A stretch of DNA of 64,000 nucleotides from Amphiscolops sp. MND2022 (Eukaryota): positions 53,196,001-53,260,000 of the forward strand of contig OZ076417.1 in assembly GCA_964187785.1 (NCBI GenBank), read 5' to 3'. The translations under genes and the position numbers were made by a program. The notes beneath the pieces are model-generated. The model ran no database searches, was not told the origin of the DNA, and saw nothing but the letters and a program-made list of their open reading frames with translations. This document shows, piece after piece, positions 10,697 through 58,378 of the stretch (positions within the stretch are counted from its first letter, which is position 1; each line of letters opens with the position of its first letter).

Positions 10697-10887
10697 CTTG
10701 ACACGGTCGTAATTTTGCTGGTGTTAGTAGTTCGCGAGGGAATGCAGCAAGGTCTGCATATGACTATGTTGTCGTGGGTGTTGATTGCACCAAGCTGTTC
10801 TTGTTCAAGGGGTCACTGGTTGTTGCTGTTGTTCAGGGTTGTAGTCTTCTTCGTCATCATCCTGTTTGGGAGTTTTTGCGGTAATAA

Positions 10888-11914: not shown

Positions 11915-12060
11915 CGAGAAGAATAGGAAGTTCTAAATGCATCCCCGCCAGCACTGTATGATTTCTCTGAAAGAACAATAGTCCAAATATCGGTCCTGTT
12001 AGGTTCTCCATTACAATGAATATTTCACAGCACTCGATGTCACTAATCTCGATTATCAAT

Positions 12061-31162: not shown

Positions 31163-31401
31163 TGCGATTTTGAACTTTCAGACTCTGTTAACTCGTTTTT
31201 TTTTAAACTTGATTTACGTTTTCTTTGTTTGTATGTATTTATTGCAATTTTTTTGGAATGCTGACAAGGAGGATAATATTATGAGTTTCAAGTCCTCGAG
31301 TTTAAAGGAAAATTTGTCAGTGATTTGTTTTTAGTATCTGTATGAGTCTGAAAAGTTTGGGTTGGGGTTGGGGCGTAAGTTATATTTTTCACCACGTGTG
31401 T

Positions 31402-32997: not shown

Positions 32998-35016
32998 TTA
33001 GTGGTGGTATCGATAGTCAGATGCTAAATCGTTTTCGTCAAAGGGTTCGCCCTGTATTTTCGCTCTGAGATTTCTGAGAACAATGTCATTATTTTGTTCG
33101 AGGCGAATCCTTGCATTGTCTCTGAAGTATCCTGATGATACCGAGATCAAACCCGATGTGGGTTTGTGGAAATGGTGTAGTTCAGAGATGTTATTTTCTG
33201 GTTCGTTGTGGGTTTCAGTTTGAGCTTGTGTACGTACATTTTGTTTTTCTTCCCATAGTTGATTCTCGTCTATTTCATCATCGGGGAGAATGTAGATGTG
33301 TTCTTCTTCTACGATACCTGATGATTGGATGTTGACTTCTATTGCCTTTGTGTAGATGTCATTGCGGATAGTCATTTCTAGCTTTTCTTTTGGGTTTACT
33401 TCTGTTCTGGATAGAAAATCTGCTGCAGTGTTCAAGGAACCAGCGACGTGGGCAATGACAAAATTATATTGCAATACGTAATCGCAGGCGTTCCAGAGTG
33501 CTGGAGGAATCATTTTTGTTTGAAAGAATCGGGTTACCGAGCGATTGTCGGTAAACACGATTACCGGGAAGGTGTTGCCCCACATGAGGTGTCCAAATTC
33601 CACAAATGCGAAGTATATGGAAAGGAATTCTTTTGCGTAGATTGACATCTTGGTTTGTGTGGGGTTGAATGTTTTGGATCCAAACGCTATGGGTGCATAG
33701 GTTTTTCGTTTGGATTGTAACTTCTGGTTCGGGTCATCTTCTATCATGATTGCATAGCCCGCAGCAGTAAAACTAGCATCAGACATGACTATGAGCTGTT
33801 TGTGTTTTAGTGGTTGTTTCAGTGCCAGTTGGCAGGAATTTTCGAGAAGTTTGTTCAAGCTTGTGAAGTCGTCGACTAAATTTGTTGGTACATAGAACTT
33901 GGAAGTTTCTTTGAGGAGTTTGAAAAACGGGGTTAGACGTTCTGAGAGGCGAGGAATGTAGTTTCGGTAATAATTCAAAAATCCGATATACCTTTGTAAT
34001 GCCTTTTTTGATTTAGGAAAACGAAGCTTTGAGATGAAGTCTTTAACCTTGTCGGCTTGTGGGGCGACTCCATCTGGGGTGATTGTACGTCCCAGAAAGT
34101 CGACTTGTTTGACTCCGAAATGACATTTAGACATTGAGAGTTTTAATCCTGCGTTGCGGATGCATTCAAACACTGTTTTGATGTTAAGACACAACTGTTT
34201 GGTGTCGTTGGCTGCTCTGCCTATGTCATCGACATATTGGGCACATTGGTCTGCTTTAATCGCTTTGTCTAGGTAGTCTCTCATGAAACTCGAAAATGCT
34301 GAAAGGGATCTGCTGAGACCCTGGGCAAGCCTACGGTATGCGAATGTTCTGCTTGCAAAGTTAAAAGCGAGCATCTGTATGGACTGATAATCTGCCATTT
34401 GGAGGCAGTGGTAAGCAGTCTAGTTTACAGAAAAGTTTTCTCCCCGCCATATGTTGGGCTGCATCCGATAATGTGCTTACCGGGTGGTTGTTGTTGGCGT
34501 AATCTTCTGTGATTAGTTGTTGATTTTTCGTAGGTCGACTAGAAGTCTGAGTCGCCCGTTAGGTTTGCGTTGTGCAAAGATTGGGCTTGTGTATTTTGAG
34601 AAGGGTAGAGTTGTTATGATGCCATACTTGTGTAGAAGTGCGAGTTCTACAGTGATATCATCTTTGAGGTTAATTGGAGTCGGTAGACTTTGGCTATAAG
34701 CAGGTCTGTCATCGTTGGGTGTGAGTTTTACTTTGAATTCACGATTTATGTCAATATCAAAACGATGTCTGGCAAAAATATCGTGAAACTTAATGAGGAT
34801 TTCTTCAATTGCTTTGCGTTCATCTGAGCTGAGTGTTGTGTCAGACCAATCAAAGTGTGAGAGAAATGCTGTTCTGGAGGTTTCACTATCATGTGGGTTT
34901 AGTTTCTCGAGTTCTTTGAGTTCGAGAAGTTCATTATATATACGTTGCTGAATTGGGGTGTATGTTGTAGGGTCGCCTGGTTCTTCAGGTGTAGGGAACC
35001 AGTATGTTTCTTGGTC
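32998..35016 (-). pseudogene. RT and RNase H of element 2 pol, with an ~8-nt frameshifting deletion near 34410
   Basis: YVDDIG, FLGRTI, VMSDAS, VFTDNRS. LDC(SQA)YHC is collapsed to GACTGCTTACCAC. Confidence 0.93.
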
Positions 35017-36189
35017 TTAATGTTGTTGTGGTACTTTAAGGAGTTCATTTATGTGGACTTCAGTTGTTTCCTCATATTGTATCATGAACGATAGTAACGC
35101 TGGATCAACTGGTTGTATATGCTTGATTTGTTCTGGGGTTAGTATCTTAAAATCTGCTAAATGGGTATCCATTGTGATTGTATGGGGTAGTTCTGAAAAG
35201 TTGATAATTTGATAATCGATAGCATTGTTGTTAACAATGCTGAGTGATGCAGTAATGAAAATGCTATCATGATTTTCGTATTGTTGTGATGGGGTAACTA
35301 TGCCAGTGGCATTATGGTCCATTAGGTGAGGCATTCTGCTTGCTATTACAAGGGTTTCGCCTGGTTGTAAGGTATAGGTGTTTTCGGCAAATAAGGGTGT
35401 TGCTTGGCGTACTGCTGTTTGGGTATCGGGTTTAAGTTGCATTGACAGATAGGGAAATGTTAAGATGCCTTGGTTGACATCAAAAATTGCATTGTTTCTG
35501 CGGAGGAAGCACAATCCTATCAGTGGGTTCGGTAGATTTTTCATGTAGATGAAATTTTCTTTTGGCATGAAATCAGCCACTTCGAATTCCAGTAGTACCG
35601 TACCAATGGGGACTTCTAGTTGTCCGTTGGCCACCATGATTTGGAAGTTTGGTGGGGGACCAGTTTCTTTAATTGCTTCATTTGCTAACAACTTTATTTT
35701 ATTAAGATCTTGTTCGAAGATCGCACTTGTAAGGGCTCCGGTATCAATAAGACCGTCAAGTGTAAGCTTTTCGAAGTCCATTGGGATATAGTACATATGG
35801 CGTTTTCGTTTTAATGTCAAGGAGGTTGAGATCGGAAGCTATGACAAATTTCGTTCCTTGTCAAATTGTATGTGTTCGGTGAGGTCTTCATTGAGAAGAG
35901 GTTGTTTTTCATCATTGCCAGAAGTTTTAATTAGGACTTAATTTTTTGGTGATTGTGGGGATTCTGGGGTTAAGTCAGTTGTGGGAGAAGTTGGTTGTTG
36001 TGTAAAATAGTTGTCTGGTGCGTCATGTAAGAGTTCATATATATCTTCAGGTTGAGTTTCTTGTGTTGTTGAATCATTTTTATTGTTTATGATTTTTGTA
36101 GGTTTTGGGCTCGGCTGATGCTGCCAGACATCTGCAGGGCTTAATTTTTGTAGTGGTTTTTTGCAAAGGCGTGGCGATTCTAGTTTAAA
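35017..36189 (-). pseudogene. pol N-terminal linker and aspartic protease of element 2; in-frame stops near 35938, 35840 and 35017
   Basis: LIDTGALTSA, IMVANG, IGLCFLRRN. Confidence 0.9.
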
Positions 36190-38036
36190 TCCTTCGAAGT
36201 GGATTGTTGTGGGCGTTCGATTTTTGGTTTTATTGGTTTTCGAGCTTGTTTGTATTCTTCAATAACTTTCTTTTGGGCTTCGGTGAGATTCCACTTAGAT
36301 GGGCGATTTTCCATGTTGGCGCCAAAGTAGCAATTTTCTTCCTCGTGACCTGGTGTGTTGCAGTTTTCACTCTTTGCCGCATCCGGGTCTTCTTCAAATT
36401 TTCGTCGTTTTGCTAGTTTGGGGCAATCAGCCATCATGTGTCCTGCCTTTTTGCAATAACGGCATTGGTTATTTTTGTGTGTTTTATCAGGTACTGTTTT
36501 AGGCGTTTGTTTTTTGGTTTTTTCGTTCGGTTTTTTGTTAGTTTTCTCAGTGTTTTGTTCTTTTTTAGTAGCGGTCATTTGGGTTTTCACTAGGGGCTCG
36601 TCTGCTTCGAGACCGTTAAGTTCCATCTCTCTTTCGAGATGTTTAACTATCTGATCGTATGTTCCATTTTCGAGGTAGGCTTGGTTTATGGACTTTTTGA
36701 GATGTGGGGGCATTTTTGCGTAGAGTAGATTCTCTATCATTTGATGGGCGTTGTCCCCAAACGCTTTCTCGGCACTTTCTTGGAGTTCTTTCAGGAAATC
36801 CGGGAGTTTTTGGTTCTCTGGGTCAAATGAGAGTCTGTTGAATCGATGCTTGGCAGATGCGCTAGACTCTGGTTTGACGTACTTTCTGCGGAAGACCTTT
36901 AGAATATCATCTAAGGTTGTATTTGGGGTTCTTTGTATGTTTTTGAATGTTTTGAGAGCCAAACCTCTTAGATGTGCGTGAAAATGGTTGATTTTCATTT
37001 CCTCTGTTAGGTTTGGTTGCATTCGAAGTGTTGTGTGGAATAAGTCTTCAAAGTATTCGAATTTCTCATTTTTCTCATTTTTCCCATTGAAGGTGAGTGT
37101 GTTTTTAGGATGAAATAATGACTGTGGAGAATTTTTGTTTGCCAATTTTTCGATTGCTAATGCAATCTGATTTACTGGATCGAGAGGCTTCGGTGTCATA
37201 TTTGACGAGTTTTGGTCTGCGCGGGATCCTAATGTGTCGTTTAGCTTCTGTGAGCTTTGTGTATGGAGTTGTTGGTTGGCTCCTGTCACCATGTGATAAT
37301 CCTCTATTTCTGCTTCTGATTCTTCGTCAGAATATATATTTATGTCTATATCCGATTCACTTCGGAACAAGGGTTTAGTAGGATGTTTGGGATCCATCGT
37401 TTTAGAAGCTCTAAGAGGATAATTGTCGTTTTCAGAATCTGAATTTTCTTTCTTAGATGCGTGAACTCCTATAGGCGGGTCTATCCTGGATCCCGATGGT
37501 TGTGGTTCTTGTATCTCATTTGTATCAGACCTTGGGTTTGTCGTCATTGAAGCACCCTTATTGTGTTTTATCTCCTTCAAAATTGCTTCTAGTTTGTTGT
37601 TCATTTCTTCTCTCATTTTCTCTATTCTTTCAGTATTTTTCCGCTCAACAATCTGAGTCCAAACTTGTATCTCATCACTAATTTGACTGGGTTCTCTTAG
37701 TTGGTTTTCCGAGTTCAATCCACCTAAACTTTCTTGAACATTTAGGTTAGAATTATTTAAAGTTATATTACCTGTTCCTGGAGAGTCAACTCTAGTTTCG
37801 CTCGTTTCTCTCTCAGGAGATGGGGTTGCTAATCTCCTTGATCTTCGACTCCTCTTATTTCCCATTTCGCTCAGTAGAAAACAAGTTATGTTTGTTGGGG
37901 AAGAATTTGAATTATGTTCTCGGCACGGAAAATCCAATCTTGGAGAAAGCAATGAAAATGTTGATAGTATTAGCAAGAGTCTGGAGAAATTGATACAACT
38001 GCACTTTGGAGAGGTTATTTCAATTGTGTCTTGCAT
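36180..38036 (-). CDS. gag of element 2 (likely start at 37865 or 38036, inside the 5' LTR); CCHC knuckles
   Basis: 618-aa ORF; FNGKNEKNEKFEYFEDLF; CRYCKKAGHMMADC; second knuckle SENCNTPGHEEENC. Confidence 0.93.
   Translation of the reverse strand: MQDTIEITSPKCSCINFSRLLLILSTFSLLSPRLDFPCREHNSNSSPTNITCFLLSEMGNKRSRRSRRLATPSPERETSETRVDSPGTGNITLNNSNLNVQESLGGLNSENQLREPSQISDEIQVWTQIVERKNTERIEKMREEMNNKLEAILKEIKHNKGASMTTNPRSDTNEIQEPQPSGSRIDPPIGVHASKKENSDSENDNYPLRASKTMDPKHPTKPLFRSESDIDINIYSDEESEAEIEDYHMVTGANQQLHTQSSQKLNDTLGSRADQNSSNMTPKPLDPVNQIALAIEKLANKNSPQSLFHPKNTLTFNGKNEKNEKFEYFEDLFHTTLRMQPNLTEEMKINHFHAHLRGLALKTFKNIQRTPNTTLDDILKVFRRKYVKPESSASAKHRFNRLSFDPENQKLPDFLKELQESAEKAFGDNAHQMIENLLYAKMPPHLKKSINQAYLENGTYDQIVKHLEREMELNGLEADEPLVKTQMTATKKEQNTEKTNKKPNEKTKKQTPKTVPDKTHKNNQCRYCKKAGHMMADCPKLAKRRKFEEDPDAAKSENCNTPGHEEENCYFGANMENRPSKWNLTEAQKKVIEEYKQARKPIKPKIERPQQSTSKDLN
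36183..36189 (-). promoter_or_regulatory. -1 programmed ribosomal frameshift slippery site U UUA AAC at the gag stop
   Basis: GAT TTA AAC TAG ends gag; the -1 frame continues as the pol linker (FKLESPRLCKK...). Confidence 0.8.
37279..37291 (-). promoter_or_regulatory. Primer-binding site TGGTGACAGGAGC directly after the 5' LTR
   Basis: Starts with TGG (pairs with tRNA CCA) with no gap after LTR ...ATCACA. Confidence 0.88.
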
Positions 38037-42179: not shown

Positions 42180-42460
42180 TCCCCAATGTTCTAAAGGGCC
42201 TGAATAGTACATGAAACTCTACCTATGATTATCGGTTTATATTAGGTTGGCAGCCCAATAAAATTCTGTCCACCTAGCGTAACATGTGGATCTGTACGCA
42301 ACCGACGACATAACTATACGGATTATTGGCATGGCCGTTGAGGGTCAATTGGTTGGAACTGGGAGGTTATGACCTGTCCACTAACTTTGTCGTCGTGGAC
42401 GCTTTCAATGGCGTGGGAGAGTTTTAGTTGGGAAGAAACTTGCTAAGGACTCACTAACTC
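42180..42460 (+). pseudogene. Decayed retroelement protease-like fragment
   Basis: Frame-broken IRIIGMAV / LSTNFVVVD...FLVGRNLLRT resembles the retropepsin C-terminal (I/L)LGRxFL motif. Confidence 0.4.
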
Positions 42461-42575
42461 AGTTACTCAGTTAGTGAGTCCTTAGCAAGTTTCTTCCCAA
42501 CTAAAACTCTCACACGCTTTTTCCAGTGCGGTTAGTGAACAAGCAGGCTGCTTGTTCACTAACCGCACTGGAAAA
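42411..42575. repeat. Two back-to-back long inverted repeats: 49-bp arms with 9-nt spacer, and 28-bp arms with 1-nt spacer
   Basis: 42411-42459 vs 42469-42517 (1 mismatch); 42519-42546 vs 42548-42575 (perfect). Confidence 0.95.
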
Positions 42576-43666
42576 CATGCTGCGGGGCACATTTGTCCCG
42601 CCTGTACGATTCACTGAAGCATGTGTGTAATTAGACTTGCTCGCCACCACGGAATTCAAATAATTAATTTTTTTAGAAGGCAGAGAGTCCACGTTTTAGT
42701 CGGCGCTTTTCTCAAGAAAAGAGTCGACTATAGTCATGGCTTTTCGTCAGTGTTTTGTTTTCATACGCCTGAAACGACCAAAATAGTTTAACAAACTTTA
42801 GGGTATTACAAAATTGCACCTGTTGGCCTAGGGAACTGAACCAAAAATGTTTCCTTTTTTTCTGCGTAACGTACAATACCGGGCGAGACTAAAGGTTTCA
42901 CTCTTTCAGTTTTTTTTCGGGCGCACCAATTCCGTCCGAAACTTTTGGGTTTTTCGGTAGCTGTAGAAGAGAGTACTTCGACAATTTGGAGTCCTTTTGC
43001 TATTTCTGAGCCATAGATATGGGCCGGTCCCGGCTTGTTGGGCAAAGGTATGCGTTCTACTTCAGTCACTGGTCAAAAGCCTAATGCCGATATTGGCCAG
43101 GGGATGTCCCTCATCTTGATCAGGCCCGGCAACTGTCCGTTGAAAAGCCAGAAAAGTACTTAAAAAGGTCCACAGGTCTTCTGGCGTTGGATGAATTCAT
43201 TTAATCGTGTCACCCTAGGCAAGTGCTTAAAATTCACGCCGTGATCACAAAAGTCCACCTGGTTTGGGTAACTGTGAAGGTAACAAGGTTATACTTTACT
43301 TTGATTACGTTTTCTGTTTTTCTTCTGAGAGACTAATGAGTATCATATGATCCGGATAAGAGAAGTTTTTGAAGGAAACTTCAAGATCAAGGATGCTAAA
43401 CGCGACATTTGTGAAGAAACAAGACGCCCGCTATGCACCGGGATATTTTGACTAACAATAGGCGCTTAACCGAAACTTTACTCTCTTGGCGAAACGCGAA
43501 TTACTTCGGATATAACGTCAAAAGTTCGGTTATAGCGTACTGGTAAAAATGGGAGCATATTTTTTGAACCTCCGCATCCTCCTTAGTAGAATGCAATATA
43601 GTTCTGATATAAGGTCAAAAATTCGGAAATAGCGCCATATTTCAAATTTTCGCTTCCTCCTTAGTC

Positions 43667-43790: not shown

Positions 43791-44497
43791 TCGTCACGGT
43801 GGAGATTTGGCAGAATTTGGAGAAAACGCAACACAGATTACGATTTTCCTCCCCCAAAATATGTGGGCGGAAAATAACAATAAAATACTTGGAGCAAATT
43901 GTCTGCGCTGTAGGCGCAAAGCCCGTCGCAAAAACAACTACAAAGTTGCGCAACTGTGAAATAACCAGAACATTAGACGGAATTCCGAGGGCGGTTTCCC
44001 TGGGGGGGGCTTCAGAAGCACTGATGTTACTTGTACCTTCAATGCAATGAAATTGTCCCTGGTTGAAGTCGCTGCCTACTCAAGGCTGAAGGGGATATTG
44101 CATTGGATTCAGAAGCTAGTAGAGTTGCTTTCTGCGAGATTAGGCACCAGTGGCAAGAGCCCTTTGCGATTTCTCATTTTCGGTAGATCAAAACGTGATG
44201 CCTCCTAAGCAAAGTTTGGCGCACCCGAGAAGGATACGTAAGTGATGCACTATTTTTTTTCCAAAAATCACGCTTTATATGGCCATCATAATCAAGCAAT
44301 TATTGGAAGATGATTTGTCGCTTCAGGGTAGTATCATTTACATTGGACCACCGACGACGCAACCAGAACCGTAATGCTGTTGGTTTGAACAACCCGGGTT
44401 TCCCGACCATCCCGATCATAATCTGACCATATTATGGCACCATACAAATCATACAAATTTCCTTACTATGATCTTGCTATGATCGGCCTGGAATCAT

Positions 44498-44626
44498 ATA
44501 TGGTCCAGAGTATGGTCAGCCTGAAACCATAAACTTTTATGGTCCAGTATGGAACCATATATGGTCCAGAATATGGACAGCCTGAAATCATAAATGGTCC
44601 AGAGTATGGACAACCTGAAATCATAA
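44498..44626. repeat. ~33-bp degenerate tandem repeat (TGGTCCAGAGTATGGACAGCCTGAAATCATAAA)
   Basis: Three to four related units. Confidence 0.8.
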
Positions 44627-45073
44627 AAACCCAAAAGTTCAATTCTTATCAGATAGATGTCGGACAAGGCAACCACTTGCGCACAAGATGCACAAAAATT
44701 TGTTGCCGAGGTCCTTATGCTGTATTTTTAGGGAGGCACTCAGCTCGTGAGATACATAGTATCGCACTTGACAAGACCCACGACAAGAACGTGGCCTCCT
44801 TCGGGTCTCAGAAAGAGTAAATCACAATAAGCTCCAGGGAATTGATACCGCAGTGAAATCTTAAATCGAATTCAATAGGTTTACAAGAATCTAGTTGAAG
44901 CATTTGAATGACACTAAAACCTGTTTTATTATAGCCGAAAAACTCTTTATCAAACAGCAGATCATAAGGTCATACATTGACAACGATAGATTGGAAAAAT
45001 GAAAGCTCCTGGTTACCTTATAATGCAGTTAAACTTTGAATCAAATTTAGATAAGGTTACCAGTGTGATGGTA

Positions 45074-46995
45074 ATTGATGCAATTGAATGACTCCAAAAA
45101 CTGTTTTAACATGGTCGAAAAACTTTTTAAACTGCAGGTCATAAGAATATATTTTTAGAACTTTTTAAAGCATGTACTCCCAGCATGCTTCAAATGGTCC
45201 TTCCTGAGCCTCTATACAATACTATTCGAAGAAAAATGTCTTTTCCTTTTTTTTCAACAGTTCCAATTCTCAAATTATACAATGAAAATACACCTAAACT
45301 TTCGAAAACATTTTGGGTCGAGCGCGTGCAGAGTAAACGGTAGGGCCCGTCTACGGCAATCCACCTGCAGGGTTCAGGATTAAAGCAATTAACAGTGTAT
45401 TTTCGACTATAAAGGACACTATAGTGATGTAGCAAGAAAAAGGTAAAAAGAGTTGAAAAGAAATCGTACAAAGTCTAGATCTACAAAAGTGTCCTTAAAC
45501 ATGCGTTGGCTCTTGCACGGCGCTTCTAAGATGGAGTATGTGTGGTCTTAACTGGAAGTTTGCACTTAGGTAACTTTGACAGCTGTTGAGAGGAAAATTG
45601 CGATTTTTGTGTTTTTCACTACTACGTCTCGTGGACAGTTTTCCGGCAGACCAAGAATGTTAAAACGGTTTAATCACTGTGCAAATTGCTTCAACAAATC
45701 CTAGCACGTGTGTCTAGTGTAAAAATGAGGTTGTTATCTCACTTTTTTGATTTCAGACGGTGTCTATCGAGGAGTTTTTGTGCAAATTTTGACAAAGTCA
45801 GCTATTTTTGCATCAAAACGCACGCCCGAGGAAGGTGAAAATCACTTCTAGTGATGTTAGCGACCTGAAATTTTCACACGGTAACCTACATTAGCAGATT
45901 CGTGGGGAATTGAACGCCGATTGCGCTAAATTGACTTTACCCGAAACACTGGGGCTCGTCAAAATTGTTTGAGAAATCGAGTACGTCGTGAAATTCACAC
46001 TTTTCTATCAAACTCGCCTTCTAGGCAACCTAGCTATCTGAAAGTTTGCATACGACCGTAAACAAAACCCACATAACAGAAAAAACAAAATGGTGTGGTG
46101 CCCGGACCGACATCTGGTGATCCGAAGTGACAAAACTATAGTGAACCCTTGGTTTCACTTTTTCAGGTCTAATATTACGAAAAAAAAACAATTTCTTCGT
46201 GTTGGATGGTAGCAGAATGCTCAAAATGCCCTAATCGTCAGCGTTTGGTGCCGTACAGTCGAGAGTGCAAACGTTCTGGTGCTGGGATGTCCCGGAGATA
46301 TCGCACTGTGTTCAACTAAATATCGATTTTTGCGTGACTTTTCCACGAATTTCAAGCGAAACTGCGCCTAAGTTTTCTTATCAACTAGTAATGCTAAGCT
46401 ACGAAAACCAACCACTAACGTAATTTTTTGCGGTCTATACGATGCTGCAATCAGTTTTGAGCTGCTTCTACTAGGAGAGATTTCGACCTGTCTCGGGAAT
46501 GCTACTACAGTGTTCCCAAAAAGTCGCAAAATGAACGTTTTCCGCTCAGGAACCACTGGTTAGAATCATTCGCGGATTTCTGCGTTTGCAACGTTATACA
46601 CTAGATTAGCAAATGTAAACAAGTAAATTTAGTAGGTTTCAAGTGAGGTCTCTCAAATTTAGGTTCACAAGTATGATCGTAATTGATGCAATTGAATGAC
46701 TCCAAAACTGGTTTCATTATGGTCGAAAATCTTTTCAAACTGCAGGTCATAAGAATATATTTTTTGAACTTCTCAAAGCGTGTACTCCCAGCATGCTTCA
46801 AATGGTCCTTGCCGAGCCTCAGTACTATACTATTCGAAGAAAACTTTTCCTTTTTTTTCAACAGTTCCAAGTCTCAAATTATACAAAGAAATAACACTTG
46901 AATTTTCAAAAAAAATTTTGGATCGAGCGCGTCTCACGGCAATCCACCTGCAGTTCAGGATTCAAGCAACTAACAGTGCCACTTTAGTGATGTAG
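45074..46995. repeat. ~320-350-bp direct repeats at 45074-45430 and 46682-46995 (partial third copy near 44900-44970)
   Basis: Shared ATTGATGCAATTGAATGACTCC...GTACTCCCAGCATGCTTCAAATGGTCCTT...GGCAATCCACCTGCAG. Confidence 0.85.
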
Positions 46996-47419
46996 CAAGA
47001 CAAACATAAAAATTAGTTCAAAAGTAATTGCTCCAGAATATTGAGGATTGGTTTTTTTACAAACAGTCCTACTTTGCCTCTATACCAGCGAGTTTTATAT
47101 TTTTTCTAAAATTCCTACTGTCGTTTGACAATTTAGATGAAAAAAAACCGAGTGACTGGAATAGCACGTCAGAAAATCAAAAAATGTCCAAAGTCTTGAA
47201 AATGGCAAAACCTTCGCGTTTTTTGGCACTGCATTGGAATCTGAGATTTAACTTGGACAAAACTACCAGTTCTTTGAACCACACTAAGGGGTGTTTTCTT
47301 GTCAAAATTTTGTTTTCTGAACTGCAGCTCACAAGTTGACAACCACACAAAATAGAATTGGTAAAATCATTAATGTATAGAGAAAGCAAGCGAAAAAAAG
47401 TACGACCTTCTATCAATTC

Positions 47420-50025
47420 TTAATCATGTTCAAAGTGTTTAAGCAGCGGTACAAAGTATATTCTATCATCAATCTGAAGTTTCACTAATTTCTCATCAAT
47501 TTGAGACATCGAGTACTGCCTAACATCTTCTGTAGCTCTCGCTTCGAAAAAAGCGGCTGGTAGGTCCTCATTCGCGTCAATGCAGCGGTATAACTTTTTA
47601 CAACGATAAACTCTCAGCAGCAGCTGATCTTCTGGGGAGCTCTCAAAAAAAATTAGCACTTCACCCGCAACCAGTTCTTCATCGCAGTATACAGTAACAA
47701 AGCTGTTGACATTACTTTCGTTGTTTGAAGCTTCAATGGTGTGAAACTCTGTTTTCGTATTCACAAAAATTTTTCCAGCCAACGGCGGAAGATACATTCG
47801 CAGATGGGGGTTAAGTTTCGCATAATTTCTTTCGAAATGGCTTTTCCCTCTCAGCGGAGACACCCAATGAGAGATAGAGTCATCAGCAATTCTTTTTTTC
47901 CTGGAAACTTTGTTTCTGATATATCTCTCAACAAGAAGATCCATATGATTAACTGAGCCAGAAAAAGTTTCTCGAACTCTCGAACATGACTGCGGATGTA
48001 GACCAAAGTGGGCCGAACATCTCCACCTAAGGTAAAACAAACATCGAACGAAAGTCACTCATTAGAAACCAATATGCAAAATTTTATGCACCCGCTCAGG
48101 ACTCGATTCGGAGGAGCGTGCCCATTTCTTCAGCAAAAAATTACTCACCTGCCAAGCCAGATGAGATAAGCTAAGAATGTTTGCCGAAAAGCATTCTTCG
48201 CCGTGCTCGTTTTGTGTTTCGTCAAGGAAATGTTTCATCAAATTACCACCCGCGGTGGCAAACTCAGACGAAATCAGGAACAGTCTAATGGCAAAGCTGA
48301 AGATCATGAACCGGGCATAGAGTCCGTCTTCCAAAACGTTCCGGAGAACAACTGGCCCTACGTAAAGTAGCCACACTTTGAATTCGGTTGCTTTGAAATG
48401 TGGCAGCTTGTCGAGTCCTCGCACTGGTCTTTTAAACTCCTTGGGTAGCTGAAAGTCATGATCATGACTTTTCGAACCAAAAACGAGCAACTTTTTAACC
48501 GATAAATTTGGACAAATAAACGTTTCATACTGCAATATAGAGGTGTTTCCGGCTTGATCTTATTTATTCCCCATTAAAAAAGCTGCGTTCACTTTGGAAG
48601 GCATTTCAATAATTTTCTACGGTTCCGTTTTGAGTATCGAGTTCAGTCAGAAATAACTGCAATATCACTATCAATCAAATAATTGTTTCAACAAGGCATC
48701 CATTAGTTATTTGATAAACACTTTAAGGAAAATTGCTTTTTTTGACTGCAGCAACTTTGGCAATTTCGAGAAAAAAATCAATAGGCAATCACAACCTATG
48801 AATGCGGAGATGAATTCAAATAGACATGATCAGAAACCTTGACAGAAAGTGCGACTTTGTTGGCTTCAGTTAGGGAGCGCCCAAGTCTGGATTGAGAAAT
48901 CTGAAGGAGAACTCTCGTAACACCCAACAGAACCTGATGCATGTAATCAATAGGCGCAGTTAGGGGTAAATTGCTGATGAGTTCAAAGAGCTTGCTGCGA
49001 CTCTTGACACCAAAAGTATCAACCTGCACTCCATCTTCAATTGCAGAAACATTTTTCAGATGATGGCCGGGGTCACGCATTTCAGAATCAACATTCGGAT
49101 AATAATGAGTTCGACCACTTCGACGAGCGAGAGTGTAACAGAGTGTGCAGCCATAGAGAGCATTGTATTGAGCCATAGCTAGAAGTGACGCTTTTGCAGG
49201 TAGATCAGCCACAAGGAAAATGATTTCCATAACCAGCAAAAACTTCCTGCCTCCAAACTCCACGATTTTTTTTTTGGTTGAGAGTTCAATCTTGATTTTC
49301 TGCAGAAAATAACGTTCAACAAAAAGAAAAAACAACTAAAAGAACTTAAAGGATTCAGAAATAACTCAAAAATCGAATTCCATGTCGGCTTCTTCGATCC
49401 AAACCAGAGAGAAGCGAGGATAATATTCTCGAAGGCGCGCCGAATAGTTGGAGGTAAATTTGCCACCCCTAACCAGACAGGCCAAATTGAGGTTCCATCT
49501 GACTTGACTAGACGAACACCATCCGAATTCAAAATGAGAAAAATGCGAAGCTCATTCATTTCCAACGAAAAACAGTCCGGTATTTTCAAATCGAGTTTAT
49601 TGTCTCGACCAACTTCATATTCCCAAATTAATTCTATGTGCTCCTGCACTACCTCACGAATTTCTTCAGTGAAATCAAGCGTGGTCCAATCCCCATTTTC
49701 TTCTTTGCCTTTTAGGATGGTTCTTTGCAACCTGAGTTTTTGGTACCGACGCTTTTGAACTTTAAAGCTGGGACATCGTGAAAACGGGAACGATTTTTTG
49801 ATCAATGAGAACCATTCATTGGCTTCCACATCAGAAGTGCCATGCTTGGCAATAATTAGGTCGGCTGCTAGGAGGAAATTATCCAGAGTAACGTCGGACG
49901 ACGGGTGAAGTGTTCTAGGTACGTCTTGCTCGTGATCGAGAAGTTCACTTGAAATACAAAATGATTTCAGCAAGACCTCGTTCTGAACAAAACGAAACAC
50001 TTAAATCAGATAACTCAACAGCGTC
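47420..50025 (-). pseudogene. CMC/EnSpm (CACTA-type) DDE transposase, multi-exon, with lesions; exons ~50025-49365, 49299-48838, 48448-48149, 48026-47420
   Basis: LNSDGVRLVKS..SIWP..ANLPP..R...NIILASLWFGSKKP; ADLPAKA...YGCTLC; PIDYMHQVLLGV; LPKEFKRPVR...FKATEFKVWLLYVGP; FGPLWSTSAVMFES. Frameshift after FES; one donor lacks GT. Confidence 0.92.
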
Positions 50026-50103
50026 CTACAAGTGAAAATAAAAAAAAATAAAATGAATTGATTTGAAAATGCAACCCTCTTTCAACGCTTTAATTATTCT
50101 AAC

Positions 50104-51067
50104 GTTTCAAACCTCAGTGCTTGTTCTTCGACATCAAAAACATCTTCGACACTATCAGGGGCTATTGTTGACACATTCGGCACGCTCATTTGATCTCTGT
50201 CAAGCTTAGGGCACTTCGGAGAAGAAATGAAAAAACATAGATCCGGCGTTGACGAACAATTGGACTCTGAATCTTCGGTTTCAGTGTCATCAGCTGTTAC
50301 TGACACACAACTCCTGTATTCGTTTTTCTTCGGTTTTTTCTTCTTGACCTCCTTCCTTGTTACATTGAAATTCAATTTCCGATTCTGATACCTTACATCT
50401 GGACGGTCTTTTAGGACGATAAGGCGACAAAGAATCAAGAATCGTTCTTCCACGGAATCAAGGCTACCAGATAAAGCCCCATGTCTATCTGTGAAGTCGC
50501 ATTTGCACGACCTGTTATTCAGGTCAAAATAGTGAGGTCCGTAGTCGACAGTCAGAGCCTCGCCAGGTCTGCACGATCGAATGACAGTCAGTTTGACACA
50601 TTTCCTACCATTGTGTTCCGTTGCCAGAAACTGAACATAAGGAACACAAGAGTGATTAGCAAAGCGGACTGCACCAACCAGTACTCTTTTGGCTTTGCAG
50701 TATTCTGTTTCATCGATGATAGATATAGGGTTGATTGAAAGCTCTTTACTAGGTGGTATCCGCTCCATATATCCTCTACATTCATGCAAGATTTCACCTT
50801 TTGGGAGTGATGTTTCTTTCTATTCACAAGCTCATATCCATCATATTTATCGTGCTCGAACTGTATCTTACTTTTTTGAGCATCTTCATAACACGATCGG
50901 AGTAGACTATCGTACCATGCAAGTTTTTTATTTGATTGCAGTTCCTGTAAATACTGATCACGGGGAACAAGACTAACTAAGGTAGCACTTTTCCTTTCTC
51001 CACTTTCGACGAGATCTTGCACCACGAAAGCGTCCGACAAAGCAATCAGTTCGCAATTAGTGAGCAT
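50104..51067 (-). pseudogene. SET-domain protein of the Suv4-20/KMT5B (H4K20 methyltransferase) type directly upstream of the transposase; 1-bp frameshift near 50820
   Basis: GYELV..ETSLPKGEILHECRGY; LVGAVRFANHSCVP; GEALTVDYGPHYFDLNNRSCKC. N-terminal MLTNCELIALSDAFVV resembles the Suv4-20 pre-SET helix. Confidence 0.85.
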
Positions 51068-52169
51068 GGACACGTTCATCCAAGACTTCAAAATCTTCAA
51101 TAGAAACAAATTTAAAAAGGCACTAAGGAACAACAAACAGTGTTTTGAAGAAAAAAAACGCTCCAATGAGGCGGAAATTACTTTTACCGGGTTTCCCATG
51201 TAGCCAACGGGCCTACTTTGGGTCGCCAGGAAAAAGATTAGTGCTTTACATTTAACGCAAAAACTCTGAACGTTTCAAAATACGATTCAAACACCGGAAA
51301 GGCAATTGTACAGAATGAGCTTCAAATTACTCATCAGGTATTACAAGTATTTAACTTCAATCTCATTTGCTTTAAATACCCCTCGGTAGCCAACGGGCCT
51401 ATCGAAGGAAGCAAATAGTAAGATTCGAAACCCTCTGGTAGAAAGTCTGATCTCTGACATCAAGCGAAAAGACTCAAATACTCTCAATAGTCAAAGGACA
51501 ATACTAAAAAAAACTGAACGAAACTGAAAATGAGTTTTTCAAAGAAGAATTCTAGGATGAATGAACTCGTATAATTGCTTTTTTAATGAATGAATAGGAA
51601 ATCTGTTGTACAATAAGTTAGCACGCTGCATTATGGAAATTCCTTTCAATACCAGAGGTAAAACTGGTAAATTACTTCTTTGATTTCACGAAGTGACTTG
51701 TATCAAAAAATTTGGTAAAAAGACATCGCCGTCAATCAAAAAGCCATGAGAAAATCGGAAGTCTTTTGTGATCTTTATGTCATTGCCGAAAGAAAAAAAT
51801 TCAACCAACTACTATTTCTTGCTAGCATTCCCACAGAATGATCGCAAACTTTTCAAAATATAGCTATCAATTTCAAAAAAGGGTAGATTTTTTCTGTCAG
51901 GAAAAGTGAAAGTTCAAGAGGTTTTGTGTATACGCAGAAAAAATGCTGAGATACAAGTCAATATGGAATCAACAACATTGGGGAAGAAATGGCACTCATT
52001 TTTACAATCTTGTACTTACTGTCACAGCACAGTATTCGCAAACAATAGAGTAAAATTCTATTTTGCGCAGAACTTTTCAAGAAAAACAAACAATCAACTG
52101 CCTCCAAGTAGCCTGAAGTCAGGTCGAAAGTGGGTTTTTTCCTGGCGAAACAAAAAGATGAAAAAAGCA

Positions 52170-54530
52170 GGGTGGTTGAAGGTAAAGACCATATGGAAGT
52201 AATTACCAATTGCAGAAGCAAAACTTGTCAATGTTAAAATACGATAATAAAGAATTGGGAATTTAGCCCTCATTGGATACAAGGCAGACAACACGCCTGC
52301 CATAAATCAGAGTTATCTACGGGGCAGGGAAGATTAAAAGGTACGAAAAAGAAAAAACAATTCTGATCTTTCACGTGGTTCAAGCCCACTTTCCTGAGAT
52401 AAAAAAAGAAAAACGTACTTGATGGTACTTGATGACGTACTGAGAGGCAAACAGTCAAAACATAAAACTTTCCATTGGAAATAAAGTAGCACTTATGGTG
52501 TAAGGAAATGCCACATCGATGAAACTAGCGACTTATAAAAGTAAGACTTGCCACGCTTGAGAGACAGTGATTCTGAAACGAATCCAAAGTTCAAATTTCA
52601 AAAGAAATAGAGTAGCCACCGAACTGTTGAAGAGTTTGAATCATTGCAGAACTCCGGGGGACTAGGAACCACAGAGTTCAAGCTCAAAAAAGAAGCAAGT
52701 CGAAGCAAAAACTGATAACTAGCGCATATCGAAAACAAATACAGATGGATTTTTATCCGATGCAGACTTTACACTGGAATTTTCTTCTCATTTCTCGGCC
52801 ATATATTCTCGCCTAAACTCCAGGCCCATTTGATTGGCTCCTTTAATAGCGTCGGCCACGGCATAACTGGGAGCTCTGGGGTATTTCCGTCTCACAACCT
52901 CTGCAACAAAATAGCAAACATCGAAAAGGTATATCGGTTTTACAGTCAAGGAAGCATTTGGAATCAGAAAAAGTTGAAGCACTGAAAGAAACAAACCTTC
53001 GAACTTGTTCCGCAGAGTCACGTCACATGGAGAACGTTGAAGACCCGGTTTTCCGATTATTTCATTCATCAATTTGCAATCTTGGTGACTACCAAATAGT
53101 TTGCGCGCGAGCACTCGACCAAACTTGCTGGGCTCAGGTCCAGCAACCAATTCCAACAAAATTTCACCGTCGTGAACAATAGAGTTACCGGGTGAAGAAT
53201 TGTCAGACTTACATGAATCCGAAGAGCCGCGCACAATCATGTTAATAACATTCAAAAACTCCTCAGTATTTGCTTTGTTTTCTATTGCCAGAGCATCGGT
53301 ATTGGTTTTACTTTCGGAAATCATTCCGTCAACAGTCTCCTGTAAGCGTGTAGCCATTTGAGAGAACTGCTGCTGATTCTGAAAAGAAAACCCAAGATAA
53401 GTGATAATGAGAAAATTTAATCAAACGAAAAAAATCAAAAATCAAACCATTGGTGCGTTTTTTGATTTTCGTTTGCATCCTTCTGTAACAGGAGAATACT
53501 CATCCAAGAAACGAACTACGGGAGATTCTTCAAACTCTTCGAAGCTTCGATTCATTACGTTTACTAGAATATCAGGCAGGAATCATCACATGAAGCTCAA
53601 TTGGGAAGTTTGGCTTAGACGTCTCGGCCTTCAAACTCCTGAAGACTCTGCACTCGTAAATCCAAGATGAAAATCATCCAGTTGACAGCCAACGGGCCTG
53701 TCAAAACAAATAAACATTAAAAATTCGAAGATGGAAATTGTTTTCATTTTTGTTTTTAAAATCTCAAACATTGATTGGTTCGCTAAACTTTGTGAAAGAT
53801 TGAATCGAAAAACTTCAATTGAGCAAAAGTTAAGGAAATCAATTTAACAATAGGAAAGTCTTGCAATCATAACAAAAAGTGAATGAGGCTGGGGAGAGCC
53901 AATAACTCGAACACAAAAATTAAACAGAACAATGAAAAAGCAGCGTTACAATATGAAAGTGGTTATCAGTTGCAGAAGCGCGACTATCTAGGTAAAACTA
54001 CAAAAACAATAAAATGGGATTTTAGCTCTTAATGGATGCAAGGCAGCCAACAGGTCTGCCATAGTTCAAAATATTCTACGGGACAAGGAGATTAGAAGAT
54101 ACAAAAAAAAACAAATCTGATCTTTCACATTGTTCAAGTTCACTTTTCTGAGATACAAAAACCGAACGTGATGACTAGCGCTGAGAAAGGAAAAGTGTCA
54201 AAACAACATAAAAACTTGCCAAGTGAATGAAAGAAGCATCTATGTTGTAATGAAATGTCATAATGATACGTGATAAAACCAGCTACTTATAGCACAAGAA
54301 AGGTTTGCCACGCTTCAAAGACATTTTCAAAACGATTCCAAAATTCAATTCTGAAATGAAATAGAGTAGTCACTGAACCTTTAAAGAATTCCATTTCATG
54401 CACTTTTCTGACTGACCAGGAAGCATAAACTAAACACAAGGAAGGATCCTATTGAAACTGACAGTGTTCAAGCTCGGAAATGAAGCAAGTCAAATCAAAA
54501 ACTGTAATAACTAGCGCAGCGCGAAAAATG
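52170..54530. repeat. Diverged ~570-bp duplicated blocks (52170-52740 and 53940-54530), each lying 3' of a BEN-like gene
   Basis: Collinear shared motifs (TTGCAGAAGC, CTGATCTTTCAC, TTGCCACGCTT, AAATAGAGTAG, GTTCAAGCTC, ATAACTAGCGCA). Confidence 0.8.
52788..53380 (-). CDS. BEN-like domain protein 1 (3' exons; 96-nt intron 52996-52901; upstream exon 53420-53698 contains stops)
   Basis: HDGEILLEL...PSKFGRVLARKLFG...RSPCD...KFE|EVVRRKYP..AIKGANQ. Confidence 0.65.
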
Positions 54531-54808: not shown

Positions 54809-57244
54809 TTAAGGTGGAGCTGTATTTTCCTTCTCAGCAACTTTTTCAATCAAGGAGGGATATTTTCCTCGGACTTCTGCACCGTACTGATTCGCTCCTT
54901 TAATTGCCATAGCCACAGCTGTTTTTTTACACTCCGGAAAGTTTCGTTCAACCACGTCTAAACAATACCAAAAATCAGCTGCCTCGGAAAACAGCAATGT
55001 TCTTAGGATTATTAATGCAGTTATCGACATTACTGGCAAACAATTTTGCTAATGTTTTAGAAATAACTACCGAAACATTCTCATCGATGGAAAACATTGT
55101 GAAGAATAGTTTTTCACAACCAAAATATTTGAGGTTTTCTCAAAAGTTATTTAAACGCATTTTTCTCAAAACTTCACACAAACAGTTCTAGAAACAATAA
55201 CCTGTGAATTTTTTCTCGAGCTCAGAACAACAACGCTTTCTTGAGTTTTTTCTATTGATTCGAGCACCAAGTCGTTGATTAATCAAAATGCATTTGTCTT
55301 CAGTTCCGAATACATTAGCAGCTAACAATCGGCCGAAAGAGCTCGGTCCGTCGGTGGGTTGCAAATCCAGCAAATTCATTCCATTATGCAAGATTGGCTC
55401 CCCTTTGTTGAAGATCGCAGTTTTGAAGGAAGTAGTGGGTTCATCAGATCGTTTGAGAAGTTCAACTAATTCTTTTTTCATGTTGTGGTTTTGTTTCACT
55501 AGCGCTCCGATCGTCTTTTCTGTATGTTTTAAAACATTGCTCAGACCTTCCGTGAAAATACTTGTTACCTCCTGCAGTTTCTGGTCACATCCACTACACT
55601 CACACGCCTATCAAACAAAAATCTAAAGAAACGATACATTTAATCGCGTTCCTGATAGAAGCAAAACGAAGTGCCTGTGAACATTTGGTTGCCAACGGGC
55701 CAACCTGGTAGCACTTTGTGTGATGCTATTTGAAAAAATCTCGAAGGAAAAAGAACAAGCTGGGATCGGCCCAAGTCGGCGCCATATCTAAGCTCAAAAA
55801 CAGCAAAAGGACTTCAAAGTGTCAAAGTATTCTCTTCTACGGTACCGGAAAAACCCAAAAATTGAACCGAATTGGCACACCAGAAGGACACTTTGAGAAT
55901 TTTCATCCATTCTGTCGCAAATCATCAAACCAAATTGAAGGAGAGGCACTTTTGGTGAAAAAAATTAGAAAAAGTCTCACAATGCCGAAAAAACTGAAAG
56001 GGGGGACCCTTTGGGATTTTTCGACATCCTCTCTGTCGGAAAACTCCACAAAAAATTGAAGGGGGGACACTTTGGGGAAAATTCTTTTTTCGAAAAAAAG
56101 TCTCACAGGGCTGAAAAAAATTGAAAGGGGGGACCCTTTGGTCTCTTTGAGTTTCTTAGATGATGTAAATATCTACTTCACAAACTTTCTTTAAATTTGC
56201 TAAGTAAGAATTTTAAGATTGTATTTGGTGGCCCGATCAGTGTGAGGAGTGTAGTCTGAAGAAAAAAGTCACTGCTATAGTCGGGCATTTTTCCTTGAAA
56301 GGATAAAGCGCCGACTAAAAACACCATAGGAAACAACATTTTAATCAAAACATCACTTACTGTCGTTTCAGGAAACACTGGGGTAGCTGAACTCGAAATG
56401 CGATACAAAGGGGTTGATCCTAAAGCTATTCGTGGCTTCTTGGCAGGAGTAGGATCCCGATCTGCCTCAGTATGCGGTCCATTCCTGGCTTCATTAGTTT
56501 TTGAGCGTTTTACACAGCTATTCACGCTTTCGGAATCCGACTCAGGTACATCAGAATAGGAGTTCACATCAAATTGCATCCTAAAACGTTTTCAAACTCC
56601 GGAAGTTATCTTGAAACAAACATGCCTTTTTGAATAGTTACAAAACAAAAACAGGAAAGCTCCAAACCTTTGCCTCTGTACCAAATGGACCACATTGAAT
56701 AAAACAGGTAAACAAGACGATAGAGGTTCGAGAAAGCACTTTCGAACGTATTTGTATCACACGCAAAAGTGGACTCAGTGAAAATGGTATTTAAATAGGA
56801 TATTAATGTTTTTCTCCATCAGGGCTGCATGAGAGTGGGCCAATCAAGAAAACTTAAATCATCTAGTCACTCCAAACCAAATATGCTAAAGACAACTTAC
56901 TCATTCAAACTGACGTCAGTCATACTGGTCTCAGCTTCTTGAACTTTCTGGTGAACCTGCTGCGCCTTGAGATTCGTTTTTTCTGCGTCACAGATACATA
57001 CTAGTGACATCATGTAATTACCAGTCGATGTCTTGACACATATTTTCTCAGATTTTTTCATTGCCATTTTACCTTCCAACGTCCAATTGGAAGGCCAGAG
57101 TGTACTATTGTGCTCCATAACGAACGGGACATCATCGCCTTTGGTATAAAACAACCAGCGTTTCAAACTTGCGGCTTTTAGGAGATCAGCATCCTCCTGG
57201 ATCTGACTGCTGCGACCTCTATTTATTCGACTTGGCAACACCAT
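54809..57244 (-). CDS. BEN-like domain protein 2, four exons, 372 aa, intact; exons 57244-56901, 56580-56361, 55607-55202, 54957-54809
   Basis: All GT-AG joins are in frame (1,119 nt). HNGMNLLDL...PSSFGRLLAANVFG...KFT|DVVERNFP..AIKGANQ. Last intron matches paralog 1 in position and phase. Confidence 0.75.
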
Positions 57245-57506
57245 ATTTTTCCTCAAAAATTGATCACGAGGACAAACAATCAGACTGTCAGTTTTCTGAC
57301 TGCAATGGATGATGCACCGAGAATACGTCGAACAAAATTTCCGAAAGTGACGATGAACAAGCCGAGAACGGCCAAAGTCGGCGCTTTATCCAAGGCTCAA
57401 AAAGATAAGCTGGTAGCAAAAATTCAAAAAAATTGAAGGGAGGACCCTTTGGTGACTTGAAAATTTTCCAAAAAATCAAATAAGACTCAAAAATAGCAAA
57501 AGGACT

Positions 57507-58378
57507 TCGAAAACGTTATATCCTAACTTTAAAAACGTTACATCCGAACTTTGAAAACGTTACATCCGAACATTTAACGTTATATCCGAACTTTGAAAAC
57601 GTTATATGCGAACTTTGAAAACGTTATATCCGAACTTTGAAAACGTTATATCCGAACAATGAAAACGTTATATCCGAACTTTGAAAACGTTATGTCCGAA
57701 CTTTGAAAACGTTTTATCCGAACTTTGAAAACGTTATATCCGAACTTTGAAAAAGTTATATCCGAACTACGAAAACGTTACATCCGAACTTTGAAAACGT
57801 TATATCCTAACTTTGAAAACGTTATATCCGAACTTTGAAAACGTTATATCCGAACTTTGAAAACGTTATATCCGAACTTTGAAAACGTTATATCCGAACT
57901 TTGGAAACGTTACATCCGAACACTAAACGTTACACCTGAACTTTGAAAACGTTACATCCGAACTTTGAAAACGTTATATCCGAACAATGAAAACGTTATA
58001 TCCGAACTTTGAAAACGTTATGTCCGAACTTTGAAAACGTTTTATCCGAACTTTGAAAACGTTATATCCGAACTTTGAAAACGTTATATCCGAACTACGA
58101 AAACGTTACATCCGAACTTTAAAAACGTTACATCCGAATTTCGAAACGTTATATTCGTACATTGAAAACGTTACATCCGAACTTCGAAAACGTTACATCC
58201 GAACATTTAACGTTATATCCGAACTTTGAAAACGTTATATGCGAACTTTGAAAACGTTATATCCGAACTTTGAAAACGTTATATCCGAACTTTGAAAACG
58301 TTACATCCGAACTTCCAAACGTTATATTCGAACATTGAAAACTTTGAAAACGTTACATTCGAACTTTGAAAATGTTTT
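57507..58378. repeat. 22-bp minisatellite (GAAAACGTTATATCCGAACTTT), roughly 40 copies, with higher-order duplication
   Basis: Period 22; the variant series recurs at ~328-bp spacing (GAACAAT at 57654 and 57982). Confidence 0.97.

Follow-up and report, generated by a model that had tools for sequence, protein, structure and literature searches.

SETMAR (Metnase) of primates joins an N-terminal SET methyltransferase to the C-terminal DDE-type transposase of Hsmar1 in one polypeptide, and a link of histone methylation to DNA-break repair has been proposed for it. It is a single-copy, domesticated host gene. Its SET domain has pre- and post-SET regions and is reported to act on lysine 36 of histone H3 (H3K36), and its Tc1/mariner transposase is immobile. 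Here, we analyzed a 64,000-nt stretch of the genome of Amphiscolops sp. MND2022 (GenBank assembly GCA_964187785.1, contig OZ076417.1, positions 53,196,001 to 53,260,000; "the window"). The explanation that best accounts for our observations as a whole, and which we consider very likely, is that the window contains a degenerate copy of a CMC-group (CACTA/EnSpm, Mirage, Chapaev) DNA transposon whose transposase natively carries an N-terminal SET domain of the KMT5B/C (Suv4-20) type. The order of the two domains is that of SETMAR. Unlike SETMAR, however, the element combines a KMT5B/C-type SET domain with a CMC transposase, is present in many copies, has been mobile recently, and comes with terminal inverted repeats (TIRs), target site duplications (TSDs), and miniature inverted-repeat transposable elements (MITEs).

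Chromatin modules have been found on other mobile elements. SET methyltransferases are encoded by transposons of Phytophthora, in the families HarbingerS and MuDR (Kojima and Jurka, Repbase Reports 2014, cited in PMC12730594). As far as the citing paper presents them, these families resemble our element in having a SET domain of their own but belong to the Harbinger/PIF and Mutator superfamilies and come from oomycetes, not animals. Fungal DNA transposons carry TET/JBP dioxygenases as a gene within the element (PMC12730594). There, too, an epigenetic module sits on a mobile element, but the enzyme is different and is encoded separately, whereas SET is fused to the transposase here. Chromodomain-bearing long terminal repeat retrotransposons carry an epigenetic reader module on a different class of element.

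Fusions of this general kind have also been tabulated. Grau-Bove et al. 2022 (bioRxiv 10.1101/2021.11.30.470311) reported SET among the chromatin domains fused to transposon domains, and Supplementary Table 6 of that work contains a Ptychodera flava gene model (pfl_40v0_9_20150316_1g29542.t1) with SET and Transposase_21, classified as CACTA/CMC/EnSpm and having partial expression support. This model very probably belongs to the same SET-CMC lineage. It is one row among 823 candidate fusions, assigned to a "like:KMT5A" orthogroup and not described as a transposon family, and the row gives no ends, copy number, phylogeny, or selection. The initial annotation of the window, made from the sequence by a model, was aware of no CMC transposon with a Suv4-20-type SET domain of its own. 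This stands as far as describing papers are concerned, as our full-text literature search found none on a KMT5-type SET domain integral to a CMC transposase lineage or on the ends, MITEs, selection, or spread of such a lineage. It does not stand for tabulated models, given the P. flava entry.

Transposons are usually seen as targets of chromatin marks, whereas the lineage described here carries a writer-type domain welded to its mobilizing enzyme. This domain has been retained under selection across diverged families and several species. The fusion is a real and long-kept feature of a barely described transposon lineage, and the interest lies in that lineage rather than in the dead copy in the window.

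The window gene matches a single intact SET-transposase protein

The initial annotation had placed a SET ORF (open reading frame) at 50789-50094 and a transposase ORF at 50000-49179 in one frame on the minus strand of the window. We confirmed the coordinates and the frame: the ORFs encode 231 and 273 aa, respectively, and 50789 and 50000 both leave a remainder of 2 when divided by 3. (Coordinates are positions within the window unless a contig or locus is named.) The SET ORF passes the Pfam cutoff for SET (E of 4.6e-8, 33.9 bits versus a cutoff of 22.4), and the transposase ORF matches DUF1258 and Transposase_21 only below the Pfam cutoffs. By Pfam, the SET call in the window is significant and the transposase call is suggestive.

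When the whole genome (1.07 Gb) was searched with each window ORF, the SET ORF gave at least 150 matches and the transposase ORF at least 141. At two loci, C9 and C11, a single open frame spanned both matches. In C11, this ORF is 1001 aa long from ATG to stop, and the C9 and C11 copies, which lie on different chromosomes, are 98.3 to 98.6% identical. Pfam locates SET at residues 137 to 187 of the 1001-aa protein and detects DUF1258 at 44 bits (cutoff, 33.1); Transposase_21, at 27.6 bits, is just under its cutoff of 28.6. Six ORF pieces on the minus strand of the window, from 51199 to 47420, align collinearly with residues 4 to 1001 of this protein. Thus, the window gene is of the SET-transposase type and is full length but broken. 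The two ORFs noticed initially are real, but the gene is longer than they suggested.

Both domains occur together well beyond these loci. At 35 of the 35 best SET matches (34 loci), a transposase match lies 0.5 to 1.4 kb downstream on the same strand, and SET always comes first; 34 of these rows were obtained by comparing the SET and transposase match lists, and 1 was obtained from a separate family comparison. This co-occurrence answers the genome-wide search of both domains that the initial annotation had called for. A search with the SET region of turtle KMT5B recovered more than 20 further SET-transposase pairs, whose SET domains are too diverged to be found with the window SET, and among them are single ORFs with both domains of 977, 1001, 934, 655, 635, 618, and 593 aa. 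Families that are 27 to 30% identical to the reference have SET and transposase in one frame of 546 to 644 aa, which are minimum lengths set by the ends of the loci. Overall, one-ORF fusions of 575 to 1001 aa are present in several families. Read along the polypeptide, proteins of this lineage have the SET domain at the N terminus, then a basic patch and an acidic linker that is disordered, and finally the DDE catalytic core.

We also observed a tandem duplication of ~792 bp just upstream of, and overlapping, the start of the 1001-aa ORF in an assembly copy of the C9 locus (L049:8943-9830) and in the C11 copy. These two copies have unequal numbers of units.

The SET domain is of the KMT5B/C type and is distinct from host KMT5

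We compared the SET region of the intact protein with all PDB sequences by using phmmer. The best matches were SUV420H2 and SUV420H1 (KMT5C and KMT5B), with E values of 8e-13 to 3e-11, compared with 6e-3 for the next SET class, KMT2C. An AlphaFold (AF2) model of the SET region, built from 11 transposon copies only, had a core predicted local distance difference test (pLDDT) score of >90. All 15 of the best PDB matches found with Foldseek were SUV420H1/H2 (E of 1e-10 to 1e-8), and the longer fold alignments, of up to 226 columns, took in the KMT5-specific N-terminal helical domain. KMT5B and KMT5C are therefore the best match in both sequence and fold, helices included, as the initial annotation had proposed from the motifs and the N-terminal helix. 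KMT5B/C and the transposon SET share the Asn of NHxC, the ...YG Tyr, and two Cys residues of the post-SET region, all of which are conserved across the transposon families; Asn148, this Tyr, and the zinc cysteines are among the invariant residues. The C-terminal region of KMT5 is missing from the transposon proteins. KMT5B and KMT5C are the cellular enzymes that di- and trimethylate lysine 20 of histone H4 (H4K20).

The genome also contains a likely exon of the host KMT5B/C gene (C12:41458719-41459054; L060), which is 57% identical to turtle KMT5B and has the motifs NHDC and CECITC. It was the top match of the turtle KMT5B query and the only cellular-type one among at least 138 KMT5-like SET matches in the genome. 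In the tree comparing SET domains with host KMT5, a check that the initial annotation had asked for, the host exon groups with vertebrate KMT5B (99/98) and the window SET groups with the C4 copy described below and another transposon protein (97/97). Judged from these sequences, the window SET is not orthologous to host KMT5. These results matter for annotation, as more than 130 KMT5-like SET matches in this genome are mostly transposon borne and counting them as host genes would greatly inflate the chromatin repertoire.

A second family of KMT5-like SET ORFs (L061 to L063) was found at C515:24539, C11:60852238, and C4:70211669, with canonical NHDC and CxCxxC motifs. These SET domains are nearer to host KMT5 (42 to 46% identity), and one is within an ORF of up to 1153 aa. 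At L063, SET is followed by an apparent tyrosine-recombinase (Crypton-like) region, which would make this another type of transposon with the same kind of SET domain.

The transposase belongs to the CMC group

An alignment of 33 proteins, drawn from this genome and others, shows no variation at D477, D560, C579-x2-C582, H786-x3-H790, and E810. The window copy retains D, D, CxxC, H790, and E and has Leu at H786. A signature of D, D, C(2)C, H(3)H, and E has been described for CMC (CACTA/EnSpm, Mirage, Chapaev) and Transib (PMC12730594). Based on this signature, the Pfam matches, and the 2-bp TSD described below, we place the element in CMC. The CMC-type call of the initial annotation is thus upheld by the invariant residues and by the 44-bit DUF1258 match of the intact relative. 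The element has in common with the CMC superfamily its similarity to DUF1258/Transposase_21, a 2-bp TSD, introns, a multigene layout, and an accessory gene of a DNA-binding type. In contrast to other members, its transposase bears an N-terminal SET domain, which is not found in the other half of the transposase tree. A 2-bp TSD is typical of Mirage. Together with the DUF1258 model, which is based on Caenorhabditis elegans, it may point to the Mirage side of CMC.

Intact relatives are recently mobile

We examined the ends of the intact copies. Homology between C9 and C11 stops exactly at a 45-bp sequence, and the same 45 bp is present in inverted orientation 10.25 kb upstream in C9. An independent public assembly contains the C9 locus as well, with longer flanks (L049), and was identical over 10.6 kb. 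The intact element, which we call family A, is 10.25 kb long with 45-bp TIRs, and its ends read CCCAGGTT...AACCTGGG. A third family A copy, on C2, has the same TIR at the same distance downstream. The TIR occurs 391 times in the genome (200 plus 191), compared with 0 times for the reversed control, and most occurrences are facing pairs 0.6 to 1 kb apart, corresponding to ~190 MITEs. A 2-bp TSD was perfect in 7 of the 9 elements examined and differed at one base in the other 2. The short elements are composed of the left 570 bp and the right 390 bp of the 10.25-kb element, with up to 99.7% identity. Since they consist of its two ends, the MITEs are deletion derivatives of the 10.25-kb element.

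A 9.96-kb stretch is 99.9% identical between two family B loci on different chromosomes. An SGNH-hydrolase-like ORF and a tandem pair of accessory ORFs lie within it, as does the SET-transposase gene. Families A and B are active or very recently active cut-and-paste elements.

The window has DNA-level homology at 47235-51345 (minus strand) to C7:38828113-38831260, at 86 to 88% identity and weaker at the 3' tail. The C7 copy is the only other close DNA-level copy in the genome, and it carries deletions of its own. Thus, the window's SET-transposase family is old and probably extinct in this genome.

The SET domain is under selection, and the fusion is found in other species

Between families, dN (nonsynonymous divergence) of the SET domain is 0.20 to 0.28 and dS (synonymous divergence) is saturated; wherever omega could be calculated, it is ~0.13. 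Constraint on the linker between families is looser (0.24 to 0.35), and young copies within a family are nearly neutral (0.4 to 0.9). Constraint between families together with neutrality within them indicates selection on the active lineage and decay after insertion.

An exhaustive, profile-free search of 1.84 billion representative proteins returned 9085 relatives. Among the best 150 of these, SET is followed by transposase in 22. In a transposase tree of 159 rows, all 30 SET carriers fall in one subtree of 50 rows (Shimodaira-Hasegawa-like approximate likelihood ratio test [SH-aLRT] support of 88), and 27 of the 30 are in a clade supported at 99. None of the 90 rows opposite the root, which include named sponge, octocoral, and springtail proteins, is a SET carrier, with the proviso that "no SET" calls on unannotated contigs are unreliable. 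The SET label changes 3 times on this tree, compared with 19.4 times for shuffled labels. As far as these sequences go, the distribution fits one old acquisition of SET in the transposase lineage.

The same fusion is present in the assemblies GCA_013332895.1, ERZ25071366, and ERZ25071359. Their DNA match to this genome is either none or 160 nt at 70% identity, and with no match or so faint a one, the fusion genes in these three assemblies come from other species. We searched the flanks of these genes and found no clear TIRs.

The SET domain may act on chromatin where the transposase acts

We tentatively favor a role for the SET domain in local H4K20 methylation where the transposase acts, which would mark the breaks for repair; we regard this as possible rather than probable. 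In such a pathway, the transposase of the active relatives would bind the ends of the element, excise it, and reinsert it elsewhere, leaving the 2-bp target duplications. The tethered SET domain would act on the nucleosomes adjoining the position of the transposase. By methylating Lys20 of H4 there, it would mark the breaks of excision and integration for repair of the 53BP1/Crb2 type, so that they would be mended efficiently. H4K20 methylation is an established docking mark for 53BP1/Crb2-type repair factors, and SETMAR has been reported to be linked to H3K36me2 in repair. It is this recruitment, together with the parallel of SETMAR, that leads to the proposal. The wider picture would be that of an old animal transposase clade in which a KMT5-type SET domain, also present on unrelated types of transposon, is an integral and selected part of the protein and writes H4K20 methylation at sites of cutting and entry, so that the transposon would come with a signal of its own for repair or chromatin state. 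We hold this picture, too, with less than even confidence. If the domain is active, the elements would offer a natural system for studying how H4K20 methylation, or nucleosome binding of the KMT5 type, affects breakage, repair, and integration. They would also be an independent counterpart, in still-moving elements, to the much-debated SETMAR.

Several points weigh against this picture or parts of it. The methyltransferase activity of the transposon SET is predicted, and its repair-marking role is drawn by analogy. The His of NHxC is kept in families A, B, D, and F, as in the window (RFANHSC), but families C and E have Ser instead (N-S-S-C), as does a consensus drawn from 13 full-length proteins of several genomes. 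The post-SET region of all transposon families reads CxC-x4-5-H, compared with CxCxxC in KMT5 (CECITC in the host); the initial annotation took the missing third Cys for decay of the window copy, and it is instead a family trait. It is plausible from the alignment that the His is a replacement zinc ligand for this Cys. With N-S-S-C in most families and His as the putative third ligand, catalysis may be weak, altered, or absent in many members. The SET tree is unrooted and, with 121 columns, too short to show where the domain came from, how the deeper branches are related, or whether the transposon SET domains had a single or multiple origins. The intron junctions of the window gene and the joined fusion transcript are predicted. 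The TIR of family A is absent from the window, and a search of the flanks of the window copy for inverted repeats found none that was convincing, nor a TSD; the search for TIRs and a TSD suggested by the initial annotation thus succeeded for intact family A and not for the window copy. Finally, the termini of family A are CCCAGG...CCTGGG and not CACTA or the CA...TG usual for CMC. The CA...TG termini hold "in most cases" for CMC (PMC12730594) and so are not an absolute criterion.

The frequent loss of the motif His gives some weight to a noncatalytic role. The SET domain could be a nucleosome-binding module, steering or easing integration by tethering the transposase or by loosening nucleosomal DNA. 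The fold and the other residues are still under purifying selection in the many families that have N-S-S-C, and one of the PDB fold matches is titled "Catalytic and non-catalytic mechanisms of ... SUV420H1." Counting against such a module are the invariant Asn148, ...YG Tyr, and zinc cysteines, together with the retention of NHxC in the window's own family and in families A, B, and D. We regard this possibility as unlikely, though it comes closest to the favored one.

Somewhat less likely still is that the SET domain writes a repressive mark of the H4K20me3 type on the element or its surroundings and thereby limits copy number or redirects or blunts host silencing. The products of KMT5B/C mark repeat heterochromatin in animals, and an apparent further type of SET-carrying transposon, with the tyrosine-recombinase-linked SET ORFs, is present in the same genome. 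Other transposons also carry epigenetic modifiers, such as TET/JBP in fungal transposons and VANC in VANDAL (PMC12730594). Self-silencing is, however, hard to square with ~190 very young MITE pairs and near-identical autonomous copies.

Local H4K20 methylation for repair, which we prefer, and both of these alternatives treat the fusion as part of a mobile element. A domesticated host fusion gene would share the domain logic of SETMAR, SET plus transposase, but it is highly improbable in view of dozens of loci, many of them decayed, the TIRs, 2-bp TSDs, and MITEs, the near-identical copies on different chromosomes, and the neutral evolution within families. The window taken alone shows only adjacency, yet chance adjacency, or a single event in which the window copy alone took up a host Suv4-20 fragment, can practically be dismissed: order and strand are the same at 35 of the 35 best SET loci, both domains share one ORF in several families 27 to 30% identical, the fusion recurs in other species, and host KMT5 lies elsewhere, on C12, and clusters with vertebrate KMT5B. 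The initial annotation had itself named a single-copy or host-syntenic SET, or related transposases lacking SET, as outcomes that would refute its reading, and we found neither.

Coding pieces, introns, and defects of the window gene

All pieces of the window gene are on the minus strand. The helical segment at the N terminus of the SET module (50588-51199) aligns to residues 4 to 94 of the 1001-aa protein and has possible start codons at 51079 and 51067. The SET core (RFANHSC, GEALTVDYG) and the post-SET region (CKC-x5-H) lie at 50094-50789, the piece with the Pfam SET match, and align to residues 110 to 298; this piece also has a basic patch (KKKKPKK) followed by an acidic/Ser-rich linker. 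The first part of the transposase (49179-50000) contains catalytic D1 (LNSDGV) and aligns to residues 337 to 530. The next piece (48796-49335), which aligns to residues 539 to 680, has catalytic D2 in VADLPAKA and the C(2)C motif in GCTLC. The piece at 48062-48535 contains the H(3)H motif, with Leu for the first His, and catalytic E; it aligns to residues 698 to 820 and ends in TAA TGA (48064-48059). The C-terminal domain of the transposase (47420-48058) aligns to residues 820 to 1001 and ends ...IYFVPLLKHFEHD.

The closest intact-like relative of the window gene is the C4 copy of family F, with a protein identity of 41 to 52%. It has a canonical 66-nt phase-2 intron (CAG/GTTAGT...GTGAAG/) between the SET-linker part and the transposase, and removal of this intron joins both in frame. 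The initial annotation had proposed a 78-nt GT-AG intron at 50103-50026 of the window. The idea of an intron is backed by the C4 homologue, but the donor appears to be another one: the donor homologous to that of C4 is GAG/GT at 50112-50111, which gives a candidate in-frame intron 1 of 87 nt (50026-50112, minus strand). The GT at 50103-50102 would be an alternative donor, giving 78 nt with the AG at 50027-50026. The interval between the SET and transposase ORFs is T rich, and a pyrimidine tract precedes this acceptor AG. Removal of intron 1 leaves a premature in-frame TAA (50001-50003, minus strand) immediately before the GTG at 50000. This TAA, already noted initially, can be read directly in the sequence. 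A probable intron 2 of 389 nt, phase 0 (48449-48837, minus strand; AAG/GTTTCT...TTTCAG/), has its position and phase in common with an intron of C4. The change of frame between the pieces at 48796-49335 and 48062-48535 is attributed to this intron and not to a frameshift. A search for RNA runs turned up none. Contigs from four runs over an intron-bearing family B copy are genomic and pass through SET, intron, and transposase without splicing, which confirms contiguity and is silent on expression. The SET-transposase gene in the window's subfamily has short introns, and other subfamilies encode the complete fusion in one exon.

A one-base frameshift near 50826-50810 splits the N-terminal part from the SET core, and the C4 copy is continuous there. 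The decay by frameshifts described initially is therefore correct at this point, but the break at 48837-48449 is a probable intron. A frame change near 49265 in the transposase adjoins a run of ten A residues and a probable short intron; we counted it among the defects. The substitutions N154Y and H786L affect conserved residues. N154 is invariant in 13 full-length relatives, in agreement with the initial reading of the PN-to-PY change as decay. With the frameshift, the stops, and these two substitutions, the window copy cannot make the protein.

Accessory genes and neighboring features

Several families in this genome have, upstream of the fusion gene and on its strand, an accessory gene in one or two copies, marked by a conserved domain at its C terminus. 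The accessory gene is also upstream of the fusion in ERZ25071359, and there are weaker matches in ERZ25071366 and GCA_013332895.1. A Pfam scan of its C-terminal domain gave no match. A language-model feature search (Atlas) pointed with high confidence to BEN-domain clusters, and the top PDB matches of a moderate-confidence fold model were all BEN-DNA complexes, with E values of 1 or more. The accessory protein is probably BEN-like and DNA binding, as these models suggest, and may be likened to the second protein of CACTA elements.

The window contains remnants of this gene on the minus strand. Copy 2, with the BEN-like C-terminal domain (52791-53420), is ~1.6 kb upstream of the SET start, with the spacing of intact family B. 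Copy 1, with the BEN-like domain (54812-55607), was recognized by its homology to the accessory gene, and there is a possible N-terminal remnant at 56903-57178. Because accessory remnants lie upstream with the spacing of family B, the window element, whose SET-transposase part had been placed at 47420-51067, probably reached upstream beyond 51067. A repeat of ~450 bp is present between the remnants, at 52168-52633 and 53948-54390. It also forms a tandem cluster of at least 12 units at C4:74938607-74946287 (72 to 79% identity).

An SGNH/GDSL-hydrolase-like ORF with the motifs GDSI and GGNDL lies upstream of the fusion gene in families A and B (L049:8160-8762 and L047:612-1250). It has no Pfam match at an E value of 0.1 and is absent from the window.

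We made several further observations in the window. The stretch at 44393-45352 is a copy of a very abundant, young interspersed repeat of ~960 bp, many copies of which are 97 to 99% identical; it is unrelated to the SET-transposase element. Because of this repeat, an apparent downstream extension of the homology to C7, at 44862-45084, was misleading, and we rejected it as part of the element. A tandem array at 57504-58342 comprises 38.5 copies of a 22-bp unit (ACTTTGAAAACGTTATATCCGA), with one inverted unit at 56582-56602 and a weak inverted match at 43505-43538. From its sequence, the array may be a CACTA-style subterminal repeat of a decayed element or an unrelated minisatellite. Two adjacent near-perfect palindromes with 1-nt loops lie at 42411-42575, with arms of 53 nt (96% complementary) and 28 nt (100%). 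Finally, the regions 2001-12000 and 30001-38000 are strongly strand asymmetric in composition over ~8 to 10 kb each, with a GC skew of up to +0.27 and an AT skew down to -0.35.

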